Shown: positions 11,001 to 51,000 of the stretch, piece after piece
How the letters are laid out: each line of letters starts with the position of its first letter
How positions within the stretch are numbered: position 1 is the stretch's first letter
DNA from: Scyliorhinus canicula
Lineage: Eukaryota
Length of the DNA stretch: 64,000 bases
Assembly: GCF_902713615.1 (NCBI RefSeq)
Contig: NW_024055498.1
Span: 1,578,527-1,642,526, forward strand
Direction of reading: 5' to 3'
The notes under the pieces: generated by a model
Database searches by the model: none
Seen by the model: only the letters and a program-made list of their open reading frames with translations
Told to the model about the DNA's origin: nothing
Translations under genes and position numbers: made by a program

Positions 11001-12212
11001 CTCATGAGCTCACAGATATTGAGTCAGCACACTCCGCCTCTGGTCAGTAACACGGATAATGTCGGCAGTCATCATTTTCGCCACCTCTTGAGAGAGCCCC
11101 AGAGAGTGCGGGATTGTGAGACCTCCTGAGGGTCAGGCCGCATTGTTGAAAAGGCGGCTTCATTCCCGCTGAATCCACCTGCCCTGTTTTATCAGCGCAT
11201 TTCTTCACTTTTTACAGCATAATCCTTCCAGACCGAACCCTGAAGTCTTCCAGGGACATGATAACAAATATTAATTCAAGGAGTAGGTAGATGAGTGCCA
11301 GGCAATCAGGATAAGTGACAGATCATAGGTCAGTGGCACTAGAACCTGCGGAAAATAAGCTAATCCCATTCCGGTGGGAGGGATTTCTTCACTCGAGGAT
11401 GTGGTGAAGCTTTGGAATTCTCTACCTCCGAGGATTGTGCAGCTTCAGTCGTCAAGTATGTTCAAGACACAGATTGACAAGTTTCTGGATATTGAAGATG
11501 TCGAGGGATATGGGGATAAAGTGGGAAAACGGTGCTGAGCTAGATCGGCTTAGGATCCCATTGAATGGTTCAGCTTCAATGGGCTGAATGGCCGACTGCA
11601 ACTCCTATTTGTTATGATCTCCTGGACAGGAAGCTGTGAGCTTGGATCTGTCAATCAACATGAATCAGCACCTTCAGGAGAATTGGGAGGGTGAATATTA
11701 GATACAGCAGAGTGAGAATGGAGGGAGATTGTGTGGGATGGAGATTTACAGCTTTCGGGGAATAAGATAGAGGAAACAATGTGACATAGAAACTAGCATT
11801 GTCTGTTCTGAGTTTCAATCCTGTACTGACAGTGACGAATTTTGTAAATTGTTTCTTCCAGGATATTAGACAAGGAGGAATTACAGACAGAAATCTCAAA
11901 TGTTACGTCCCGAACTGACAGCCACTCCCTTCCTTGGAACCTGAATACCATCGGGCTTTCAATCTAGAAGGAGAAATGTTTACCCGAACTGTTAGCTAAA
12001 GATTTCAACCATTAGTGTGACTGGAAAAGCACCGAGACCCACACAACACACACCCGAGTGAGAGAGTTCCAGTGAACTGACTGTGGAAAGAGCTTTAACC
12101 AGTTACACAGCCTGAAAAACACAACCTTCAGAGTGAGGAGATACCGTACCCGTGTTGTGGATGAGGCTTCAACTGATTGTCCAACCTGCAGAGACGTGAG
12201 GAGACCCAAAAC

Positions 12213-19600: not shown

Positions 19601-20939
19601 CAGGTGATGATAAATTGGCGACTTTTCCAATGTCCTGTCAAACTGATTTAAAACAGAAAAAAGGGAGTGAAAGAGAACGCACATAAACACAAAGAGAGAG
19701 AGCGACGTGGAGCAGCAGGGTTGAAGGGGATGAAGTTTATACAGCTACAACTCGACAAAAGTCTGCCAACCATCAACATGAACCACCCAAAAGGACTGGG
19801 ATAGCAGGTATATATTAATAATAATAATCTTCCATATTGAACATCGTCATCTTGTGTTTCCCCTCCAGGTAACATACCGTCCTGACTAATCAGATATCCA
19901 GTACTGGATAAGCAGAAATTTCCTCTCTCAATTTAATTATTGACAAGACTGAAGCCTTGTCTTCAGTCCCAGCTATAAACTCCACTCCCTCACCAGTGGC
20001 TCCATCCCTCTCCCTGGGAACTGTCTGAATCAGACGGTTCACAACCTCAGTGTCACCTAAATATGGGTTTCCAACCACATCATAACCAAGACCGTTTATT
20101 TCCACCTCAGTGCTCGTCTCTCTCTCGCTGTGTAATTTCCTCTCTGCCCTTGACTCACTCTCTCTCTCTCTTATCTCCCCCCTGCTCGTCTTTCTCTTGT
20201 TAGTGAAAGGGCAGGGAAGTGGAAGAAGCTAATTTGCTCTTTCAGAGAGCTAGCACAGGCAAGACAGGCTGAATGGCCCCGACCCCTGTCTGTATTGTAA
20301 TCACTCAATGATTCAATGAAAAAAGACTTACACTGGAGGCGATGGACCAGATTCTTCCTCCGGACCCACCCTGCTACAAACTGCCTCTTAATTGGTCTGT
20401 CTGTGTTTCCATGAGCGACGCTTGCAATAAAAAAATCAAAATACTGCAGTTGCTGGAAAGCTGAAATAAAAAGTGGAAATGCTGGAAACACTCAGCAGGA
20501 TCTGTGGGGAGGGAAACAGATTTCACATTTTCACTTTGTGCAGAATGAACTGCAGGGAACAAAAATGGTCAATATAAGCTCAGAAGTGGAAGAGAAATGC
20601 ATTATGCCACAGGAAAAGCAATTCCTGACTCTGAAAGGTGCAGTGAGATGGTCGGGGGATGAGCAGTGATGGAAACCTCATGAAAAATGAAAATGAAAAT
20701 CGCTTATTGTCACGAGTAGGCTTCAATGAAGTTACTGTGAAAAGCCCCTAGTCGCCACATTCCGGCGCCTGTCCGGGGAGGCTGGTACGGGAATCGAACC
20801 GTGCTGTTGGCCTGTTTGGTCTGCTTTAAAAGCCAGCGATTTAGCTGAGTGAGCTAAACCAGCCCCTAGCTAAACCAGCCCCTGGTTTAGACATTTAGAC
20901 ATGGTCGATGGAAGTAACAATAACATTTAAAAAAAATTA

Positions 20940-21570
20940 ATGTACAGGATGCTGGTTAGGCCAGCATTTATTGTCCATCCTTAGATGCCCTTCAGAAAGT
21001 GGTGCTGAGTTGCCATCTTGAACTGCTGCAGTCCTGGGCGTGTAGGTACATGCACTGTGCTGTTAGGGAGGGAGTTCCAGGATGTTGCCCCAGCGACAGG
21101 AGGAGCGGCGATATATTCCCAGCTCAGGGCGGTGAGTGACTTGGAGGGAAGCCTCCAGGTGGTGGGGTTCCCAGGTATCTGCTGCTCTTGTCCTTCTAGA
21201 TGGTAGTGGTCGTGGGTTTGGAATGTGTTGTCTAAGGAACCTTGGTGAGTTACTGCAGTGCATCTTGTAGATGGTACACACGGCTGCCACTGTTAGTTGG
21301 TGGTGGAGGGTTTTAATGTTTGTGGAAGGGGGGCAATCAAGCGGGCTGCTTTGTCCTGGATGGTGTCGAGCTTCTTTAGTGTTGTTAGAACTGCGTTCAT
21401 GCAGGAAAGTGGAGAGTATTCCATTACAGTCCTGACTTGTGCCTTACAGATGATGGACAGGCTTTGAGGGGAGTCAGGTGGTGAATTACTCGCCGCAGGA
21501 TTCCTGGCCTTTGACCTGGCAGCCACATTATGAATGTGGCTAGTCCAGTTCAGTTTCTGATCAATGGAAC
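20940..21570 (-). mobile_element. CR1/L2-group LINE 3' fragment of a separate family
   Basis: KAQVRTVMEYSPLSCM...TTLKKLDTIQDKAARLI is typical of the thumb region of CR1/L2-like RTs. Confidence 0.65.
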
Positions 21571-22271
21571 CATGCTAAATATATTTAAAATATGTTAAAA
21601 CTCATTCATTACTGGAGACAGAGAACAATGGTGGAAGGTGATTCGGGAGAGCAGGGGTAAAGCAGATGGAGATGGATTCAGGCCCAGAGTAAATAACAGA
21701 CCCACAAATCTTTGGAGGCGTGGGGCACGATGTCCCAGGAGGGAGAGAGAGATCCAGAGAGCAGAATTCACTTCTTTTCCTTGACTTCTCTACTTATCAT
21801 CTGGGTCCCTGCAAATCAGGGAAATGGACGGTCAAATTCCCTAGATCAAAGACTAATCCAGTTTTATGGACAGGTTGTCTCCATTCTGAACAATGGGGAA
21901 CAACCTCCTCCCAGTCATTCAAAATGTTGCCCTTACACAGATGGCGGCCGGACATGCACCTTGCTGCATCTTGCCCACCAGAAAGATTGAGGCTCCAGTC
22001 GTCGGCTAAACATTCTCCAAGGTGGCCTTCAAGACACAGGACAACAAGGGCAGCATGACAAGCAGTTAGCACTGGGACTGCAGCGCTGAGGACCCAGGTT
22101 CAAATCATGGCCCTGGGTCACTGTCCTTGTGGAGTTTGCACATTCTCCCCGTGTCTACATGGGTTTCAGCCCACAACCCAAAGATGTGCAGGTTAGGTGG
22201 ATTGGCCAGGCTAAATTGCCCCTTAATTGGGAAAAAAAATAATTGGATACTCTAAATTTATTTTTTAAAAG

Positions 22272-22845
22272 ACACAGAGACAACCCAAAATTGCCGAGCA
22301 GAAACTGGTCATCAGACTCTGCTCACATGAGGCCGGCCTGAACCGGGATCTCGGGTTCATATCACATTACATGTAACTCCGACCATACTGCCCGGGTTTA
22401 CAGAATCCTACTCACTGTCCTGGTTTGAGACAATTCACACCTCGATTACCTGTGATTATCCCTCACTCCTCTCACTCTGTTTGTTCCTATAGAGACTGTC
22501 ATTCCAGTCTGTAATGAATGAATTAAAATCACTTATTGTCACAAGCAGGCTTCAATGAAGTTACTGTGAAAAGCCCCTAGTCGCCACATTCCGGAGCCTA
22601 TTCAGGGAGGCTGGTACGGGAATTGAACCCGTGGTGCTGGCCTGCCTTGGTCTGCTTTAAAAGCCAGCGATTTAGCCCAGTGTGCTAAACCAGCCCTGTT
22701 TGATTATCTGGCAATTGTGTCTCTGCCTATATATACTATGTTTGTGAACCTGCCTCCACTTCACCTGAGGCAGGATCACCGCTCCGAAAGCTTGTGATTT
22801 CCAATAAACCTGTTGGGCTTTACCCTGGTTTTGTGAGACTTCTCC
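22272..22845 (+). mobile_element. Older Penelope-like 3' fragment with degenerate hammerhead, interrupted by a SINE
   Basis: EQKLVIRL..GLNRDLGFISHY matches the C-terminus of 24676-26190. Hammerhead-like CAC CTGAGGC A GGATC ACC GCTCC GAAA GCTT GTG at 22762-22796. Confidence 0.75.
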
Positions 22846-23079
22846 CTGGGCTTAAACCCAGCTCAGAGGCGGCATCTCCACCCCTGCCCCACCAGAAAGG
22901 TGGCGTCAAACAAGGCCCACCACGAGAAGTTGTGGCTTTGATCAGCGTAAATATGGGGACTGGGAAGTTATTTCTCATAGTTTCAGCTTGAAAAGGATGT
23001 TTTGATGCCTCTCCACCAACCTGGCAGATCTGTCCTCCCGGAGCACCGCCAACTCCCCCAGAACCGACCGCGGCCCCGA

Positions 23080-23375
23080 GACAGCTCAGCCCCGCCCCTC
23101 ATTGTCTCCGATTGGCTGGAGGACCAGCCTCTCCCACACGGTTCTCCAGCCCCGCCTCTCATTCACTCCGATTGCTTGGAGGACCAGCCTCTCCGATTCG
23201 GTCCTGCAGTCCCGCCCCCACTTTCTATTGGTCGCGAACCGCCGTCAATCATGCCCAGGGAGCTGGAGCATGCGTGGTGCAGCTGCCAGGGCTGAACATT
23301 ATTGCGCATGCGCGGAGTCGAGGCCTTTGGCGGAAGGAGCCGGAGAAGCGGAGTCAGCGTCAGGCGGTGGGTGGG
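23080..23375 (+). promoter_or_regulatory. CpG-rich promoter and probable non-coding exon 1 of ZF3
   Basis: Three 60-bp-period units (starting 23087, 23147, 23207), each with a GC box and an ATTGG-type CCAAT box (second box reads ATTGC). NRF1 TGCGCATGCGC 23303-23313; candidate donor GCG|GTGGGT at 23367. Confidence 0.7.
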
Positions 23376-24666
23376 AGGATTTGGAAACACTTTGTGGATC
23401 CGCAAACCCTTCACCATCATTGTCAGCTCCCTGGGTTGCAGCTGCGGAGCTCAGATCAATGAGGACTCTGATCTCTGGCAAGGAAGGAAATTCCCAGACA
23501 GCAGTGGAAGCTGCTTCATTAAATATATTCAAGGCTCAGTTAGATCCGAAAGGCAGTCAAAGGTTATGGGTGACAGGAAGAAAATGAAGTTTATGGTCAC
23601 AATCCGATCAGCCATGATCTTATTAAATAGTAAGAAGTCTTACAACACCAGGTTAAAGTCCAACAGGTTTGTTTCAAACACGAGCTTTCGGAGCACGGCT
23701 CCTTCTTCAGGTGAATGGAAAGGCTTGTTCCAGAAATGTTTATATAGACACAGTCAGAGATGCCCCGGAATGCGAGCACCTGCAGGCAATCAAATCATCA
23801 AAGATGCAGAGAGAGAGGTAACTCCAGGTTAAAGAGGTGTGAATTGTCCCAAGCCAGTTCAGTCGGTAGGCCTCTGCAAGTCCAGGCTTGTTGGTGGGGG
23901 CCGAATGTAATGCGACATGAATCCCAGATCCCGGTTGAGTCCGCATTCATGCGTGCGGAACTTAGCTATAAGTTTTTGCTCAGCAATTTTGCGTTGTCGC
24001 GTCTCCTGAAGGCCTCCTTGTAGAATGCTGACCCGGAGATCAGAGGCTGAATGTCCTTGACTGCTGAAGTGTTCCCCAACTGGAAGGGAACAGTCCTGCC
24101 TGTTGATAGTCGCACGATGCCCGTTTATTCGTTGTCGCAGTGTCTGCATGGTCTCGCCAATGTACCACGCTTCGGGACATCCTTTCCTGCAGCGTATGAG
24201 GTAGACTACATTGGTCGAGTCGCACGAGTATGCGCCGCGTACCTGGTGGGTGGTGTTTCCACGTGTAATGGTGGTGTCCATGTCGATGATCTGGCATGTC
24301 TTGCAGAGATTACCCTGGCAGGGTTTTGTGGTGTTGTGGTTGCTGTTCTGAAGGCTGGGTAATTTGCTGCAAACAATGGTTTGTTTGAGGTTGCGCGGTT
24401 GTTTGAAGGCCAGTAGTGGGGGTGTGGGGATGACCTTGGCAAGATGTCCATCCTCGCTGATGATGTGTTGGAGGCTGCGAAGAAGATGTCGTAGTTTCTC
24501 CGCCCCAGGAAAGTACTGGACGACGAAGGGTACTCTGTCAGTGGTGTCCCGTGTTTGTCTTCTGAGGAGGTCGGTGCGGTTTTTTGCTGTGGCGCGGTGG
24601 AACTGTCGATCAATGAGTCGAGCGCCATATCCCGTTCGTACGAGGGCATAGCCCTCGTACGAACGG

Positions 24667-26190
24667 GAGGGCATCTTGAAACCCATCGTACAAGGTACAC
24701 CCAGCTTCTGTCGCGACACGACGGACTTCCTACAGAAACTCAGCACCCATGGACCAGTTGAACCAGGAACATTCCTCGTCACAATGGATGTCTCGGCACT
24801 CTACACCAGCATCCCCCATGACGACGGCATTGCTGCAACAGCCTCAGTCCTCAACACCGACAACTGCCAATCTCCAGACGCAATTCTGCAACTCATCCGT
24901 TTCATTCTAGACCACAACGTCTTCACCTTCGACAACAAATTCTTCATCCAGACGCACGGAACAGCCATGGGGACCAAATTTGCACCTCAATATGCCAACA
25001 TCTTCATGCACAAGTTTGAACAGGACTTCCTCACCACACAGGACTTTCAACCGATGCTATACACCAGATACATCGATGACATTTTTTTCCTTTGGACCCA
25101 CGGCGAGACATCACTGAAACGACTACACGATGACATCAATAAGTTCCATCCCACCATCAAACTCACCATGGACTATTCTCCAAATTCAGTTCCATTCTTG
25201 GACACACTCGTCTCCATCAAGGACGGTCACCTCAGCACCTCGCTTTACCGCAAGCCCACAGATAATCTCACGATGCTCCACTTCTCCAGCTTTCACCCGA
25301 AACACATTAAAGAAGCCATCCCCTATGGACAAGCCCTCCGTATACACAGGATCTGCTCAGACAAGGAGGAGCGCAACAGACACCTACAGATGCTGAAAGA
25401 TGCCCTCGTACGAACGGGATATGGCGCTCGACTCATTGATCGACAGTTCCACCGCGCCACAGCAAAAAACCACACCGACCTCCTCAGAAGACGAACACGG
25501 GACACCACTGACAGAGTACCCTTCGTCGTCCAGTACTTTCCTGGGGCGGAGAAACTACGACATCTTCTTCGCAGCCTCCAACACATCATCAGCGAGGATG
25601 GACATCTTGCCAAGGTCATCCCCACACCCCCACTACTGGCCTTCAAACAACCGCGCAACCTCAAACAAACCATTGTTTGCAGCAAATTACCCAGCCTTCA
25701 GAACAGCAACCACAACACCACAAAACCCTGCCAGGGTAATCTCTGCAAGACATGCCAGATCATCGACATGGACACCACCATTACACGTGGAAACACCACC
25801 CACCAGGTACGCGGCGCATACTCGTGCGACTCGACCAATGTAGTCTACCTCATACGCTGCAGGAAAGGATGTCCCGAAGCGTGGTACATTGGCGAGACCA
25901 TGCAGACACTGCGACAACGAATAAACGGGCATCGTGCGACTATCAACAGGCAGGACTGTTCCCTTCCAGTTGGGGAACACTTCAGCAGTCAAGGACATTC
26001 AGCCTCTGATCTCCGGGTCAGCATTCTACAAGGAGGCCTTCAGGAGACGCGACAACGCAAAATTGCTGAGCAAAAACTTATAGCTAAGTTCCGCACGCAT
26101 GAATGCGGACTCAACCGGGATCTGGGATTCATGTCGCATTACATTCGGCCCCCACCAACAAGCCTGGACTTGCAGAGGCCTACCGACTGA
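24667..26190 (+). CDS. Penelope-like RT plus GIY-YIG endonuclease (N-terminally truncated, otherwise uninterrupted)
   Basis: RT motifs VTMDVSALYTSIP, GTAMG, YTRYIDDIFF. Cys-rich linker CKTCQ; endonuclease NVVYLIRC..WYIGET..R.NGH..HF..H. Confidence 0.95.
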   Translation, partial: EGILKPIVQGTPSFCRDTTDFLQKLSTHGPVEPGTFLVTMDVSALYTSIPHDDGIAATASVLNTDNCQSPDAILQLIRFILDHNVFTFDNKFFIQTHGTAMGTKFAPQYANIFMHKFEQDFLTTQDFQPMLYTRYIDDIFFLWTHGETSLKRLHDDINKFHPTIKLTMDYSPNSVPFLDTLVSIKDGHLSTSLYRKPTDNLTMLHFSSFHPKHIKEAIPYGQALRIHRICSDKEERNRHLQMLKDALVRTGYGARLIDRQFHRATAKNHTDLLRRRTRDTTDRVPFVVQYFPGAEKLRHLLRSLQHIISEDGHLAKVIPTPPLLAFKQPRNLKQTIVCSKLPSLQNSNHNTTKPCQGNLCKTCQIIDMDTTITRGNTTHQVRGAYSCDSTNVVYLIRCRKGCPEAWYIGETMQTLRQRINGHRATINRQDCSLPVGEHFSSQGHSASDLRVSILQGGLQETRQRKIAEQKLIAKFRTHECGLNRDLGFMSHYIRPPPTSLDLQRPTD

Positions 26191-26335
26191 ACTGGCTTGG
26201 GACAATTCACACCTCTTTAACCTGGAGTTACCTCTCTCTCTGCATCTTTGATGATTTGATTGCCTGCAGGTGCTCGCATTCCGGGGCATCTCTGACTGTG
26301 TCTATATAAACATTTCTGGAACAAGCCTTTCCATT

Positions 26336-26370
26336 CACCTGAAGAAGGAGCCGTGCTCCGAAAGCTCGTG
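26336..26370 (+). ncRNA. Minimal type I hammerhead ribozyme in the Penelope pLTR (mirror copy 23679-23713 on minus strand)
   Basis: CAC-CTGAAGA-A-GGAGC cgt GCTCC-GAAA-GC-TC^-GTG: intact core, 5-bp stem II, palindromic AGCT stem III, 3-bp stem I. Predicted cleavage after 26367. Confidence 0.8.
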
Positions 26371-26599
26371 TTTGAAACAAACCTGTTGGACTTTAACCTG
26401 GTGTTGTAAGACTTCTTACTGTGCTCACCCCAGTCCAACGCCGGCATCTCCACATCATGGCTTATTAAATAGAAGAGCAGGATTGATGGGCCGAATGGCC
26501 TACTGCTCCTGAGGATCTTAAGATCTCTCCGTTGAGAAAAGGAAATACTGGGCAGATCTGTCCATCAGCATGAGTTAGCACCTTCAGGAGAATAGGGAG

Positions 26600-26770
26600 G
26601 GTGTATCTTCGATGCAGCAGAGTGAGAATGGAGGGAGTGAGTATGTGTGGGGGGGGGGGGGAGGGAGTGAGTGTATGTGGGGGGGAGGGAGTGTATATGG
26701 GGGAGGGAGTGTGTATTGGGGAGGGGGTATGTATTGGGGGAACGAGTGTGTGTGGGAGGGGGGGGTGCAG
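26600..26770. repeat. G-rich imperfect tandem repeat (GGGGGAGGGAGTGTGTATT-like), G-quadruplex-prone
   Basis: About 8 degenerate units expand a segment that is short in the paralogous cassette at 11710-11745. Confidence 0.75.
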
Positions 26771-27038
26771 GGAGGAAGCAGGGATGGAAATTCAGGTCTG
26801 GGGGAATGAGAAAGCAAGTTCCACAGCAACTAAAATTATCTTCTGAATTTCTGAGCTGCACTGAGTGATGACATTTATAAACTCCTTCAACAGGATATTA
26901 AAAGGAGACGATTTGCTGCGAGAAATCTCAAACCAAACTTCACGTCAAGATCTGACAGATTTGTTAGGACGGGGAAAACCATCGGCCATTTTACCATCAG
27001 TGTGACTGGAAAAGCATCAAGTCACGGACACCCGCACC

Positions 27039-27935
27039 ATGGGGAATCCGTGGAAATGTGAGGATTGTGGGAAGGGATTCACTTTCCCATCTCGGCTGGA
27101 AACTCATCGACGCACTCACACCGGGGAGAGACCGTTCATCTGTTCTCAGTGCGAGAAGGGATTTAGAACTTCATCCAACCTGCGGACACACCAGCGAGTT
27201 CACAGCGAGGTGACACCGTTCATCTGCTCCGAGTGTGGGAAAGGATTTACTACTTCACCCGGCCTACGCAAACACCAGCAAGTTCACACTGGGGAGAAAC
27301 CGTTTACCTGCTCCATGTGTTTGAAGGCATTCGGATGTCAATACAACCTGCAGAGACACCAGCAGGTTCACACTGGGGAGAGACCATTCACTTGCTCCGT
27401 GTGTGGGAAGCGATTCGTTGACTCATCCAGCCTGCTTGCACACTTGCGTGTTCACACTGGGGAGAGGCCATTCACCTGTTCTGACTGTGGGAAGGGATTC
27501 ACTCAGTTATCCAGCCTGCAGAGACACCAGCAAGTTCACTCTGGGGAGAGACCATTCACCTGCACTGTGTGTGGGAAGGGATTTGGAGATCCATCCTGCC
27601 TAGTCAGACACTGGCGAGTCCACACTGGGGAGAAGCCATTCACCTGCTCCTTGTGTGGGAAGGGATTCATTCAGTTATCCAATCTGCAAAAACACCAGCG
27701 AGTTCACACTGGGGAAAGACCATTCATCTGCTCTGTGTGTGGGAAGGGATTTACCAATTCCTCCAACTTGCTAACACACCAGCGACTTCACACTGATGAG
27801 AAGCCGTTTATCTGCTCCGTGTGTGGGAAAGGATTTAAACGTTCAGCCCACCTTCAGATACACCAGCGAGTTCACAAGTCATTACAGGGGTTGGACTCTG
27901 CTGTTGTTGCTGCTGTTAATCACATCCAGGACTGA
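27039..27935 (+). CDS. C2H2 zinc-finger protein ZF3 (10 intact fingers)
   Basis: 298-aa ORF; all ten C-x2-C-x12-H-x3-H units intact. Acceptor cttcaacAG at 26892-26893. Confidence 0.92.
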   Translation: MGNPWKCEDCGKGFTFPSRLETHRRTHTGERPFICSQCEKGFRTSSNLRTHQRVHSEVTPFICSECGKGFTTSPGLRKHQQVHTGEKPFTCSMCLKAFGCQYNLQRHQQVHTGERPFTCSVCGKRFVDSSSLLAHLRVHTGERPFTCSDCGKGFTQLSSLQRHQQVHSGERPFTCTVCGKGFGDPSCLVRHWRVHTGEKPFTCSLCGKGFIQLSNLQKHQRVHTGERPFICSVCGKGFTNSSNLLTHQRLHTDEKPFICSVCGKGFKRSAHLQIHQRVHKSLQGLDSAVVAAVNHIQD

Positions 27936-29231
27936 CCCATGTTCATTCTGACAGTTAGTGCTGTTAGAGTCGGAGGGTTTGTTTCTGTTGCACTGGCTGG
28001 TGTCGGAATTTTCATTCCAGTGACTGAATCTCTGAGTGAGGGCACATTTCCACTGAAATGATTCACAGAAGCAGATGTAATGTATTAATTTTATCTTGCA
28101 CAGTTGTGATGAATGTTTATTATATTAAATATATTGTATTGTAGGGACATTGGAACCGAAGTAGGCCATTCAGCCCCTCGAGCCATTCAGCCCCTCGAGC
28201 CTTTCAATGAGATCATTGCTGATCTGTGGCCTAACTCCACAGGGCCCTAACTTGGCCCATGTCCCTGAATATCTTTGCTCAACAGAAATCTATCTATCTC
28301 CGATTTAGAATGAACAACAGCTTCTAGCTGTTTGTGGGAGAGAGTTCCAAGATGTGTAGGTTATGTTAAGGAGTTATTGGGACAGGGCAGGGGGGTGGGG
28401 ATGGTGCAGACTCGATGGACTGAATGGCTTCCTTCTGCACTGTCAGGATCCTATGATTCTATCCTTTTTTGGTTCAAAATGAATAACCGCACTCTTGCTG
28501 ACATTGAATTCCATCTGCCACAATTTTGCCCATTCTCCTCGTCTGTCAAAATCTTCCTGCAATTTTATGCTATCATCTAGACTGTCTACAATGCCACCTA
28601 ACTTTGTATCGTCTGCAGATTTGTATATATGGCTTTCTATGCCATCCAAGTCGTTCATGAATAATGTGACTAATTGAGGTCCTGTCACAGATCCCTGTGA
28701 TACACCATTAGTCACATCCTGCCAATTAGAGTACTTCCCATTATCCCCACTCTGTCACCTGCCACTCAACCAATTCCTAACCATGTCACTGATTTTCCCA
28801 CAACTCCATGGGCTTTCACTTCAGTTAACAGACTCTTATGTGGGACTTGGTCAAATGCCTCTGGCCATCCAAGTTAATAACATCAATAGACATTCTCGTG
28901 TCCACTAGCTCATTCACCACTTCAAAATATTCACTGAGATTTGTCAGGTATAACCTTCCCTTCACTAATCCATGCTGGCTCTCCCTGATTGATCAAAATC
29001 CTTCAAGCTGTTTAGTTACCCCTCTCCCTGAGTATAGAATCTGGAAATTTCCCCACGACAGATGTTCGGCAAAGTGGTCTGTAATTTCCTGGTTTCCCCC
29101 TTTGACTCTTTTTAAAAAGTGGAGTGACGTGGGCAATTTTTCAATCCAGGGAGACTACTCCTGAATCTAGGGAACTCTGAAAGTTTATAGTTCGGGCATC
29201 TACAATGTGCCTCCCGACTTCCTTTAACACC

Positions 29232-29792
29232 CTTGTCTGGTCCATCGGGCAGGAGATACAGAAGTCTGAGAACACACCCGAACAGACTCAAAAACAGCTT
29301 CTTCCCCAGTGTCACCAGACTCCTAAATGACCCTCTTATTGACTGACCTCATTAACACTACACCCTGTATGCTTCATCCGATGCCAATGCTTATGTATGA
29401 TGTGGAGATGCTGCCGTTGGACTGGAGTGAGCACAGTAAGAAGTCTTACAGCATCAGGTTAAAGTCCAACAGGTTTCTTTCAAACAAGAGCTTTCGGAGC
29501 ACTGCTCCTTCCTCAGGTGAATGCCATTCACCCGAGGAAGGAGCTGCGCTCTGAAAGCTCGGGTTTGAAACAAACCTGTTGGACTTTAACCTTATGTTGT
29601 AAGACTTCTAACATTGCTTATGTAGTTACATTGTATATCTTGTGTTGCCCTATTTTGTATTTTCTTGAATTTTGTTTAATTCCCTTTTCTTCCCATGTAC
29701 TGAATGATCTGTTGAGCTGCTTGCATAAAAATACTTTTCACTGTACCTCAGTACACGTGACAATAAACAAATCCAATCCAATCCTGGTGATT
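29232..29792 (+). mobile_element. Rex1/Babar-like LINE 3' end inserted in CR1
   Basis: SGRRYRSLRTHPNRLKNSFFPSVTRLLN resembles the Rex1-type C-terminus. 3' UTR ends AATAAAC(AATCC)n. Confidence 0.7.
29397..29609. mobile_element. Miniature palindromic Penelope derivative with two back-to-back hammerhead motifs and a 9-10-bp TSD
   Basis: Arms 29435-29523 and 29525-29609 are reverse complements (~90%). Tail 29397-29434 is homologous to 26421-26458. TGCTTATGTA at 29388-29397 and 29615-29624. Confidence 0.9.
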
Positions 29793-42986: not shown

Positions 42987-43531
42987 AATCTCATGATATT
43001 CAGCAACGATAGGTTCTGATGAATCGAGTGACTCTGTCAGATCGCGATGTGACGTTTGGTTTGTGTTTCCCGTCTGTTAAACCTCCACTTCCAGTATCCT
43101 GTAAATTTACAGAAACCTCACTGTCAGTTTAGGATAGAAATTCACAACATTCTCTCCTCGCCAACTTTGATCAAATGTATTCCTGGAGGTTTGATCACAT
43201 GACCTGCCCCCATCCTTCAGCCATTAATCGGTCAACAAATCCATCCTTGTGACACACTGCCTTCCTCGGCCAATTGGGAAGCAAAAGGACTCATTACCTT
43301 ACAGGACAGTGATTGACTGTCAGCCAAACAACCCTTATCCCATTTTCAATATTTTTCTATCTGCTGAAGATAAATGTTCAAAACAATCTTGTTTACTGTC
43401 TTGAAATGAAAATTGCTTATTGTCACGAGTAGGCTTCAAATGAAGTTACTGTGAAAAGTCCCTAGTCACCACATTCCGGCGCCTGTTCAGGGAGACTGGT
43501 ACAGGAATTGAATTGTGCTGGGTTCAGTCTT

Positions 43532-50188: not shown

Positions 50189-50821
50189 CTGTTGCAGTGG
50201 GACATGATGAATGGAGCAGTGGGCTGTGGCGGAAGTTATGTGGAGTTCTAGCATTTAACAGACAATAACGTCCCGACAATGTGTCCACAGACAGCTCTCA
50301 TCAGCTCTGAAGAGAGAAGTCAGATTTCATGCCCTTATATTTTTCTGCTCTATTTGATATGCCACTGATAGAGGATAACCAGAACAAATCTTACCCTTTT
50401 TATGTCCCCAGTGGAAGATTAATCAGAACCCACCCCGTCACCAAGCTCAGTCTAATTCATGACAGTGAGTGAAATATGGGCAGCACGGTAGCACAGTGGT
50501 AAGCACTGTTGCTTCACAGCGCCAGGGACCCGGGTTCGATTCCAGGCTTGGTCACTGTCTGTGCGGAGTCTGCACGTTCTCCCCGTGTCGTTGTGGGTTT
50601 CCTCCGGGTGCTCCGGTTTCCTCCCACAAGTTCCGAAATACTTCCTTACTCGGTGATTTAAACATTCTGAATTCTCCCTCAGTCTACCTGAACTGGCATC
50701 AGAGTGTGGCAACTAGGTGCTTTTCACAGTAAATTCATCGCAGTGTTAATATAAGCCTACTTGTAACACTAATAAAGATTATTATTAAACAGGACATCTC
50801 CATCTACATTCAACACAGGTT

Positions 50822-51000
50822 GTTTAGCATAGGGCTAAATCGCTGGCTTTGAAAGCAGACCAAGGCAGGCCAGCAGCACGGTTCAATTCCCGCAACAGCC
50901 TCCCCGAACAGGTGCCGGAATGCGGCGACTAGGGGCGTTTCACAGTAACTTCATTTGAAGCCTACTTGTGACAATAAGCAATTTTCAATTTCAATTTTCA
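50822..51000 (+). mobile_element. Short SINE with a different head but the second tail type. Further copies ~1785-1945(-), 20688-20890(-), 22520-22697(-), 43405-43518(-)
   Basis: Head AGGGCTAAATCGCTGGCT..GCAGACCAAGGCAGGCCAGCAGCACGGTTCAATTCCCG (B-box-like), then GACTAGGGGC.TTTCACAGTAACTTCAT..AAGCCTACTTGTGACAATAAGC and (TTTCA)n. Confidence 0.8.

Follow-up and report, generated by a model that had tools for sequence, protein, structure and literature searches.

How does a retroelement come to lie in a genome as a kilobase-long, nearly perfect inverted repeat, and does such a copy act on the gene beside it? We addressed both questions at one locus of the catshark Scyliorhinus canicula (assembly GCF_902713615.1, contig NW_024055498.1, positions 1,578,527 to 1,642,526). 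The window is this whole stretch of 64,000 nt, and positions are counted from its first letter. A preliminary description, made from the letters of the window, had read the locus as a single, young Penelope insertion in the probable first intron of a zinc-finger gene, ZF3, on which it might act through double-stranded RNA.

Structure and boundaries of the composite

A repeat search of the window returned two inverted arms of 1021 nt each, 750 nt apart, exactly where the preliminary description had placed them (23629-24649 and 25400-26420). Base by base, the arms differ at precisely two positions (24556/25493 and 24577/25472; 99.8% identity), the same two substitutions that had been noticed at the protein level and that reappear in the translations of the two ORFs (KNRTD/KNHTD and RRQT/RRRT). 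A repeat of this length with two mismatches is far beyond chance. Both mismatches are transitions between CpG and CpA, they lie 21 nt from each other, and comparison with a consensus-like contig places both in the right arm. Contigs of other family copies show that these two sites vary within the family. Since clustered differences fit different templates or reverse-transcription error as well as they fit decay after insertion, the arms are an unclean clock, and we rejected an age derived from their divergence as unreliable (only two differences, clustered and at family-variable sites).

The two halves of the composite are not equal partners. On the plus strand, a 5'-truncated copy of a Penelope-like element (PLE) runs from 24667 to 26460, recognisable by an open frame that ends with the stop at 26188-26190 and is followed by a 3' UTR and a tail. 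Its frame has 504 codons (24676-26190, plus strand), contains the 750-nt spacer, and is part of a copy that extends beyond the equivalent of the left arm by a unique continuation of 733 nt. The left arm (23629-24649, minus strand) is an inverted, 5'-truncated copy of the 3' part of the element, equivalent to 25400-26420 and without the tail, and codes for the last 262 aa, GIY-YIG region included. Its first two nucleotides (AG) are also the end of the left duplication, a 2-nt microhomology, and the inverted copy proper may therefore be 1019 nt long.

The composite is flanked by two perfect 12-bp copies of CTTATTAAATAG, at 23619-23630 on the left and 26461-26472 on the right. This is a true target-site duplication, as the empty site rebuilt by joining 23571-23630 to 26473-26540 stays collinear over the joint when compared with six further host-repeat copies in the window, one of which sits upstream of a paralogous ZF gene (11543-11690). 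The host repeat is an older interspersed repeat, inside which the insertion landed. This sole pair of duplications brackets the entire unit, and the left arm directly adjoins the left duplication. Both the 12-bp duplication and the single insertion proposed at the outset are thus borne out.

The inversion junction (24650-24668, plus strand), read from the sequence, consists of one A followed by an 18-nt fold-back. The latter (24651-24668) is complementary to 24630-24647, with ATA as the loop, and shares 2 nt (GA) with the start of the plus-strand copy. An 8-nt direct repeat, GAGGGCAT, occupies 24642-24649 and 24667-24674, and a 17-nt fold-back insert lies between its two copies. The truncation point, where the sequence departs from that of the native element, is fixed at 24667 in two ways: by contigs of other copies (loose ends in runs X1 and X31), and by homologous proteins, which read ...LSG[HY].EGILKPIVQ.

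Identity, age and relatives of the element

Judged by its domains and homologues, the insertion is a Penelope-like element with a reverse transcriptase and, C-terminally, a GIY-YIG endonuclease. The reverse-transcriptase core, including YIDD, lies at 24769-25149 on the plus strand (Pfam RVT_1, E 1.4e-09, 38.4 bits), within the unique spacer and inside the 504-codon frame, confirming that the spacer encodes RT. The GIY-YIG core (VVYLI...YIGET...R..H; 25840-25953, plus strand), with a CxxxxCxxC motif upstream, emerges from an alignment with 11 homologues, in which C..C..C is conserved and followed by VY, YIGxT, R..R...H, E and N. The Pfam GIY-YIG model gave 19.9 bits (E 8.9e-4), under its cut-off of 22.6, while several of the homologues carry PF01541. 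A PDB sequence search with the ORF yielded a marginal GIY-YIG match only, a weak one to T4 endonuclease II. The closest relatives are RT plus GIY-YIG proteins from sharks (85-91% identity), turtles, crocodilians, ticks, sea urchins and amphioxus. Together, the RVT_1 match, the GIY-YIG motifs and these homologues support the Penelope identity first suggested. Compared to full-length relatives, roughly 380-390 N-terminal codons are absent, as is any 5' region, and hence the copy cannot be autonomous.

The family is abundant and has been recently active in the catshark genome. That this copy is young, as had been proposed, is supported by the likeness of its arms, its open frame and a CpG o/e of 0.75.

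At the right end only, sequence and arm comparison delimit a PLE 'tail' of 40 bp (26421-26460, plus strand), a concept established for these elements (PMC8557442, PMC11167929). Loose contig ends group the 3' termini of family copies at two places, 26422/3 and 26457/8, approximately 35-40 nt apart, and the left arm stops 40 nt short of the tail end, where other family copies also end. Upstream of the tail, a motif scan picked out a hammerhead-like core (CUGAAGA, stem GGAGC/GCUCC, GAAA) at 26339-26363 on the plus strand, mirrored at 23686-23710 on the minus strand. The motif continues through 26367, with a 5-bp stem II, GAAA and then a palindromic AGCU. This core is hand-defined only: Rfam found no hammerhead in 22000-28000 (E<=1) or in 26150-26480 (E<=10).

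The arrangement is not confined to this insertion. A second, small inverted element in the window (29397-29618) likewise carries a tail on only one of its arms and comes with a duplication of its own, and an independent DNA run holds many contigs joining inverted 3' ends of the family. The same architecture recurs within the window and among contigs from another individual.

These features are those of EN+ PLEs of the Penelope/Poseidon/Neptune type (Evgen'ev & Arkhipova 2005; Arkhipova 2006; Craig et al. 2021, PMC8557442), which likewise combine RT, C-terminal GIY-YIG and an upstream CxxC in one ORF, are heavily 5'-truncated, carry a 30-40-bp tail on one side only, come with a target-site duplication and reach high copy numbers. 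The hammerhead-like motif near the end of the catshark copy, to which Rfam has no match, is a tentative further parallel. The catshark copy differs in having no direct pseudo-LTR or tandem part, and its hammerhead-like core in a single additional base after the CUGANGA box and before stem II. An inverted, 5'-truncated copy adjoining the 5' end of the element is a published PLE arrangement (PMC8557442), as the preliminary description had held, and the catshark copy is an ordinary instance of it.

Formation of the inverted copy

A single retrotransposition event of the PLE very probably built the whole composite, by what we infer to be priming from both target strands. A PLE protein has been found in vitro to cut and extend both strands of its target, and two adjacent internal RT start sites define the tail (PMC11167929). 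At the catshark locus, the endonuclease of the element would have nicked both strands of the target at a 12-bp stagger, each nick leaving a 3'-OH from which reverse transcription would have been primed. On the bottom strand, synthesis starting at the distal RT start site would have produced the tail and the 1.8-kb plus-strand copy. On the top strand, a start at the proximal site, 40 nt upstream, aided by a 2-nt AG:CU microhomology, would have given the inverted arm of 1.0 kb, which lacks the tail. Finally, both cDNAs would have been joined at their ends after an 18-nt snap-back and through 2-8 nt of microhomology. The footprint matches the biochemistry of PAc (Poseidon of Anolis carolinensis; Frangieh et al. 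2024, PMC11167929), with both strands extended from two RT start sites. In PAc, the spacing of these sites defines the tail; the catshark copy has one arm per site, the sites being 40 nt apart. PAc is lizard biochemistry, whereas the shark case is a genomic end product only, from which we deduce the sequence of steps and how many RNA templates took part.

Priming from two strands normally uses one RNA without overlap, and the 1021-nt overlap of the arms needs two RNA templates or one that was used twice. Nor does the simplest version of any model predict the insert of 17 nt, a fold-back, that separates the 8-nt repeats.

A composite of this shape could also arise from one cDNA. The first strand, primed from the bottom strand, would have reached 24667, annealed to itself and been self-copied into the inverted arm, its 3' end ATGCCCTC pairing with the complementary 8 nt upstream (equivalent to 25400-25407). 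The GAGGGCAT direct repeat lies exactly at both ends that had to be joined, the junction contains an 18-bp local fold-back, and the small palindrome at 29397-29618 reverses direction at just one point (29523/29524), all as this route would have it. However, self-copying should carry on past the 40-bp tail and reach primer and flank, while the left arm stops 40 nt short, ends at the other 3'-end site of the family and joins the duplication through a 2-nt microhomology; moreover, self-copied arms should be identical at birth. We thus consider self-copying doubtful. Two successive events are a far less probable origin: a 5'-truncated insertion, followed either by a second, inverted Penelope at its 5' edge or by a DNA-level inverted duplication through replication fold-back. 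The arm differences do coincide with family-variable sites, compatible with two source copies; yet a second insertion would bring its own pair of duplications, while a single pair brackets the composite and the left arm abuts the left duplication directly, and a duplication of DNA would not stop at the proximal 3'-end site of the family.

One can also suspect the assembly itself, through a palindromic mis-join of long reads or the collapse of copies of a repeated family, as tandem and inverted PLE structures are known to trouble assemblies (PMC8557442). Among the records listed as aligned from an independent individual, none bridges the junctions at 23630, 24650 or 26460, nor the empty-site joint, so the composite structure rests on the assembly and its internal consistency. 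Run X1 does contain a 180-nt contig whose exact match begins at 26461; its first 24 letters could be the left flank, as in an empty allele. An artefact is unlikely given that the rebuilt empty site, flanked by a perfect 12-bp duplication in the occupied state, is collinear with six other host-repeat copies. Two sites distinguish the arms, which are also unequal: only one end has a tail, and a 733-nt continuation is unique to one of them. A fold-back with microhomology, as at the inversion junction, is what reverse transcription typically leaves, and the architecture is found again elsewhere in the window and among another individual's contigs. Taking these points together, we judge an artefact extremely improbable and retain a single retrotransposition event, probably primed on two strands, as the most likely origin of the composite.

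A related process is known from another class of retroelements. In LINE-1 twin priming, reportedly described by Ostertag & Kazazian in 2001, the second target strand primes internally on the RNA and produces a 5' inversion. As in the catshark, an inverted 5' segment is joined by microhomology to a direct 3' segment within one pair of duplications. In LINE-1, however, the segments are adjacent and essentially non-overlapping, whereas the catshark inverted arm duplicates in full 1021 nt of the direct copy and starts at a defined site near the 3' end.

The neighbouring zinc-finger ORF and the meaning of the insertion

The insertion lies approximately 250 bp downstream of a CpG-island promoter-like block (22950-23366, plus strand) and approximately 430 bp upstream of a fingers-only C2H2 exon. 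The block has a GC content of 0.57-0.64 and a CpG o/e of 0.64-0.82, against 0.25-0.4 in the flanks, with GC-box and CCAAT-box repeats at 23087-23240 and GCGCATGCGC at 23306-23315. At its end is the candidate donor proposed in the preliminary description (23366/23367). The ORF, called 'ZF3', encodes 298 aa by translation (27039-27935, plus strand); its candidate acceptors are at 26893/26894 and 27000/27001, and an in-frame stop lies upstream of the ATG, at about 27003-27005. The geometry described for the insertion, between 23367 and 26893, is therefore true, both positions being candidate splice sites. A homology search with the 298-aa ORF returned only ZNFs of other species, at most 63% identical, and exact-product look-ups with this ORF and with a neighbouring 1264-aa ORF found no annotated product on record. 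We also considered the promoter and ZF block as the cargo of a hAT 'Pack' element and rejected it, as no TIR with an exact 8-bp duplication encloses 21500-23300 to 26900-29600, a rejection that holds at that stringency only.

Does the insertion then sit in the first intron of ZF3, forming in the pre-mRNA a 1-kb hairpin that modulates ZF3 through ADAR editing, Dicer or interference with splicing? Its position between a promoter-like CpG island and a ZF ORF invites this reading, and so do the RNA-like data in part: in two RNA-like runs, coverage is zero or near zero over 22900-23322 and sets in within the 23323-23463 bin, and one contig joins approximately 23340-23363 to 27002 onward. A transcript reading through the region could fold into a 1-kb hairpin, with 1020 of the 1021 arm positions predicted to pair with their mirror partner (-2361 kcal/mol). 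But the 23363/27002 joint is not GT..AG at the locus and differs from the 23366/26894 pair that had been proposed, and contigs of both RNA-like runs pass unspliced across 26893. The exon-1-like stretch is multi-copy in DNA, at about 100x the depth of single-copy flanks (contig depth gives neither copy number nor expression and is used qualitatively only), so that a paralogue could be the source of the joining contig. On the arms we saw no RNA-specific A>G, in contigs of a multi-copy family that cannot test editing. Among the thousands of family copies, many of which are inverted, this one does not stand out; its supposed target, the ZF3 protein, is without an annotated product on record. The contigs are thus divided over the first-intron placement, which is no more than a candidate reading, and for the double-stranded RNA, the cruciform and the control of a TE-binding ZNF that had been put forward, the support is that the sequence can fold, nothing more. 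We hold it very improbable that the hairpin regulates ZF3. The fuller proposition, a presence/absence polymorphism in the 5' intron of an expressed fingers-only ZNF whose output the hairpin alters by editing, Dicer cleavage or a splicing block, has only a slight chance of being right. Were this fuller proposition true, an active Penelope family and a candidate TE-binding gene would be linked by direct feedback.

Intronic inverted Alu pairs of primates offer a comparison: they stem from two insertions of about 300 nt each, diverge by 10-15%, and their editing by ADAR is documented. Like them, the catshark arms are retroelement copies that lie inverted to each other at short distance, in sequence that may be transcribed, and could form long dsRNA; unlike them, they would come from one event, span 1021 nt and are 99.8% identical.

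For the host, the most likely consequence of the insertion is none, or a mildly harmful one. The practical meaning for shark genomics is a warning for annotation and assembly, as this family places long, near-perfect inverted repeats near promoters and genes. The value of the locus is otherwise modest and belongs to the natural history of an understudied class of transposons, of which it offers a very fresh and cleanly bounded copy. Its inversion junction keeps the fold-back and the microhomologies, and its arms, one with a tail and one without, correspond each to one start site. A copy with one arm per RT start site would be the in vivo footprint of a two-strand priming so far shown only in vitro, a likelier angle than the regulation of ZF3, but a weaker one. 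With the many similar copies in the genome, it could serve as an in vivo test of the two-strand priming model drawn from the lizard element.

Architecture of the inverted repeat and its target site

A repeat search of the window reproduced exactly the inverted pair of the preliminary description: two arms of 1021 nt, at 23629-24649 and 25400-26420, lying 750 nt apart. Base-by-base comparison gave the same two substitutions and no others (24556/25493 and 24577/25472, spaced 21 nt), both of them CpG<->CpA transitions, along with the same amino-acid differences: KNRTD...RRQT in the minus-strand frame vs KNHTD...RRRT in the plus-strand frame. The 12-bp duplication CTTATTAAATAG was found at 23619-23630 and 26461-26472. 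Every detail of the observation was thus confirmed, and it cannot be due to chance.

Removal of the element and one duplication copy rebuilds an empty site (23571-23630 joined to 26473-26540). The target was an older interspersed repeat, and the rebuilt sequence is collinear across the join (...ATCAGCCATGATTGAATGG.GGAGCAG.CTCGATGGGCCGAATGGCCTAC...) with six further copies of that repeat elsewhere in the window, one of which (11543-11690) lies upstream of a paralogous zinc-finger gene. By this collinearity, the whole composite goes back to one insertion that duplicated 12 bp of its target site, and on the same evidence an assembly artefact or two separate events are both unlikely. In X1, a run guessed to be RNA, the match of a 180-nt contig to the window (26461-26616) sets in precisely at the insertion boundary, the first 24 letters being unmatched. 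This contig is a candidate for an allele with an empty site, or for a paralogous copy of the repeat; it has in common with another individual's DNA four clustered differences at 26539-26551.

In order from its left end, the unit comprises the left duplication, the inverted arm, the junction (24650-24668), the direct copy (24667-26460) and the right duplication. The inverted arm corresponds to element positions 25400-26420 reversed, its first two bases (AG) overlapping the left duplication, and it lacks the 40-bp tail that ends the direct copy (26421-26460). This is exactly the layout of Penelope-like elements (PLEs) in Craig et al. 2021 (PMC8557442), where inverted partial copies are indeed a known arrangement, as had been asserted.

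Identity, abundance and age of the family

An open frame of 504 codons (24676-26190, plus strand) runs unbroken through the spacer and right arm. Its Pfam reverse transcriptase (RT) domain, at nt 24769-25149, falls within the unique spacer, where RT coding had been proposed. In an alignment with 11 homologues, the C-terminal part shows CxxxxCxxC and then VVY...YIGET...R..R...H...E...N, and it scores 19.9 bits against Pfam GIY-YIG (E 8.9e-4), below the 22.6 cut-off. The homologues are RT/GIY-YIG proteins from sharks (Scyliorhinus torazame, 91% identity; Heptranchias, 85%), turtles, crocodilians, ticks, sea urchins and amphioxus. What defines canonical PLEs is an RT with a GIY-YIG nuclease C-terminal to it (PMC8557442); the RT, the C-terminal motifs and homologues of the same kind support the Penelope identity. 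All the defining features of EN+ PLEs that we tested were clearly found except the hammerhead, of which a candidate core is present (CUGAAGA-stem-GAAA-AGCU, 26339-26367; mirror 23686-23710) but drew no Rfam match.

Full-length relatives carry about 380-390 residues ahead of the start of our frame in the alignment with homologues, and contigs of other family copies extend upstream of 24667, translating to TLCENLSGHIE|GILKPIVQ, a motif shared with the homologous proteins. Since both continue upstream there, the plus copy is 5'-truncated at 24667 and was dead on arrival. The family is very abundant: summed over contigs, the depth on the element exceeds that on the single-copy flanks by a factor of thousands, a figure to be read qualitatively only. 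Contig loose ends place the 3' ends of other copies in two clusters, at 26422/26423 and 26457/26458, and in an independent DNA run many contigs join the family's inverted 3' ends (joints 2366x-2371x to 2633x-2639x).

The window also holds a small palindromic Penelope 3'-end element (29397-29618), 88-93% similar to the large copy, with a tailed minus arm (29397-29523) and a tail-less plus arm (29524-29618) turning around at a single point, and its own duplication of roughly 10 bp, TGCTTATGTA, on both flanks; such mini-palindromes are very abundant in the contigs of the independent run. Contigs of X31, a DNA run labelled as another organism, are 99.8-100% identical to 24667-26457 (2 differences in 1256 nt; 0 in 440 nt), and at >=95% they essentially lack the insertion flanks, whose depth is below 1 in two bins and 0 in the rest. 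Their source may be trace shark DNA or a close relative; alternatively, the family may have spread horizontally.

The insertion had been called young. The term is supported by an arm identity of 99.8%, the open frame, a plus copy that differs from a consensus-like contig over 1666 nt at the two arm-mismatch positions only, and a CpG o/e of 0.75 vs 0.25-0.4 in neighbouring non-island DNA.

Position relative to ZF3

Upstream of the insertion lies a CpG-island-like block (22950-23450; GC 0.57-0.64, CpG o/e 0.64-0.82) with three GC-box/CCAAT modules (23087-23240) and the palindrome GCGCATGCGC (23306-23315). The promoter-like part, 23041-23463, has no second copy within the window, and a search around it gave no hAT-type ends flanked by an exact 8-bp duplication. 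Its depth in the independent run is 10-100 times that of single-copy flanks, which makes it a member of a multi-copy family of promoters or first exons. Just upstream is an old fragment of a related Penelope 3' end (22279-22881, plus strand; 71-76% identical), which is interrupted at about 22469-22709. The interrupting sequence is tRNA-like (Rfam tRNA, 24.2 bits at 22609-22694 on the minus strand, under the gathering score) and probably a SINE; the window has many more copies of it (87-90% at 1785-1941, 20686-20865, 43405-43512 and 50810-50990).

Downstream, the 298-aa ZF3 ORF (27039-27935) encodes C2H2 fingers only, with an in-frame TGA just ahead of its ATG (about 27003-27005). A G-rich degenerate tandem repeat (26630-26764; units of about 18-30 nt, GGAGGGAGTGAGTGTATGTGGGGGG...) separates it from the insertion and is absent from the paralogous ZF upstream region 11645-11900.

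The insertion had been placed in a probable first intron of ZF3, spliced 23366/26894. Coverage in the RNA-like runs is zero or near zero over 22900-23322, save for an X2 depth of 3.85 in bin 23041-23181, and starts in bin 23323-23463, which speaks for these runs being RNA and for a start of some kind in that bin. Also in favour of an intron, one contig of X2, the other putative RNA run, joins 23363 to 27002. This joint, possibly with extra letters between its two sides, differs from the proposed splice pair and is not GT..AG at the ZF3 locus. In DNA the depth of the exon-1-like bin is about 100-fold the single-copy value, so that contig may derive from a paralogue in a large ZNF family. Contigs of both RNA-like runs (26779-27017, 26799-26940) cross the proposed acceptor at 26893 unspliced. 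Another sequence resembling a good acceptor, ccattttaccatcAG, ends at 27000, adjoining the joint at 27002, and the interval 26894-27038 resembles decayed finger sequence. Protein homology and exact-product look-ups returned no annotated product matching the ORF. A position within a 5'-UTR intron of ZF3 is plausible, with chances that we judge roughly even.

If the 2.8-kb stretch were transcribed through, 1020 of the 1021 arm positions are predicted to pair with their mirror partner (-2361 kcal/mol), in itself a trivial outcome. The count of RNA-specific A>G changes on the arms is 0, from contigs of a multi-copy family that are unable to reveal editing. Because the genome holds very many such inverted copies, the one at ZF3 is not special a priori. 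Editing of the arms, small RNAs from them, cruciform formation and a regulatory effect of the hairpin on ZF3 are all speculation.

How the composite may have formed

In vitro, cleavage and extension by a PLE protein affect both strands of the target, and reverse transcription begins at two neighbouring internal sites; the stretch between these sites is the tail (Frangieh et al. 2024, PMC11167929). Our family agrees with this two-start-site picture in its two clusters of 3' ends, its tailed and tail-less arms and its inverted 3'-end joints. Nicks staggered by 12 bp would yield two primers: the bottom strand would prime at the distal start site, giving the tailed 1.8-kb copy, and the top strand (...AAATAG-3') would prime 40 nt further in with the help of AG:CU pairing, giving the tail-less 1.0-kb arm.

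The meeting point reads ...TCCCGTTCGTACGAGGGC-ATA-GCCCTCGTACGAACGGGA-GGGCATC... and forms an 18-bp fold-back (24630-24647 with 24651-24668, loop ATA) that overlaps the direct copy by 2 nt; 8 nt, GAGGGCAT, are directly repeated at 24642-24649 and 24667-24674. Such features are typical of a reverse transcriptase that snaps back during synthesis and joins ends through microhomology. A single cDNA snapping back at the 8-nt homology to make both arms would account for this junction, but it leaves unexplained why the inverted arm ends at the proximal one of the family's two 3'-end sites, with tail and flank uncopied; we favour two-strand priming by a factor of about two. For the arms to overlap by 1021 nt, either two RNA templates or one used again would be required. 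Both arm differences fall at sites variable among family copies in the contig comparison, and two templates, RT error or CpG decay fit them about equally well. The interest of the large copy, which is modest, lies in its being a clean in vivo footprint of the PLE integration mechanism.
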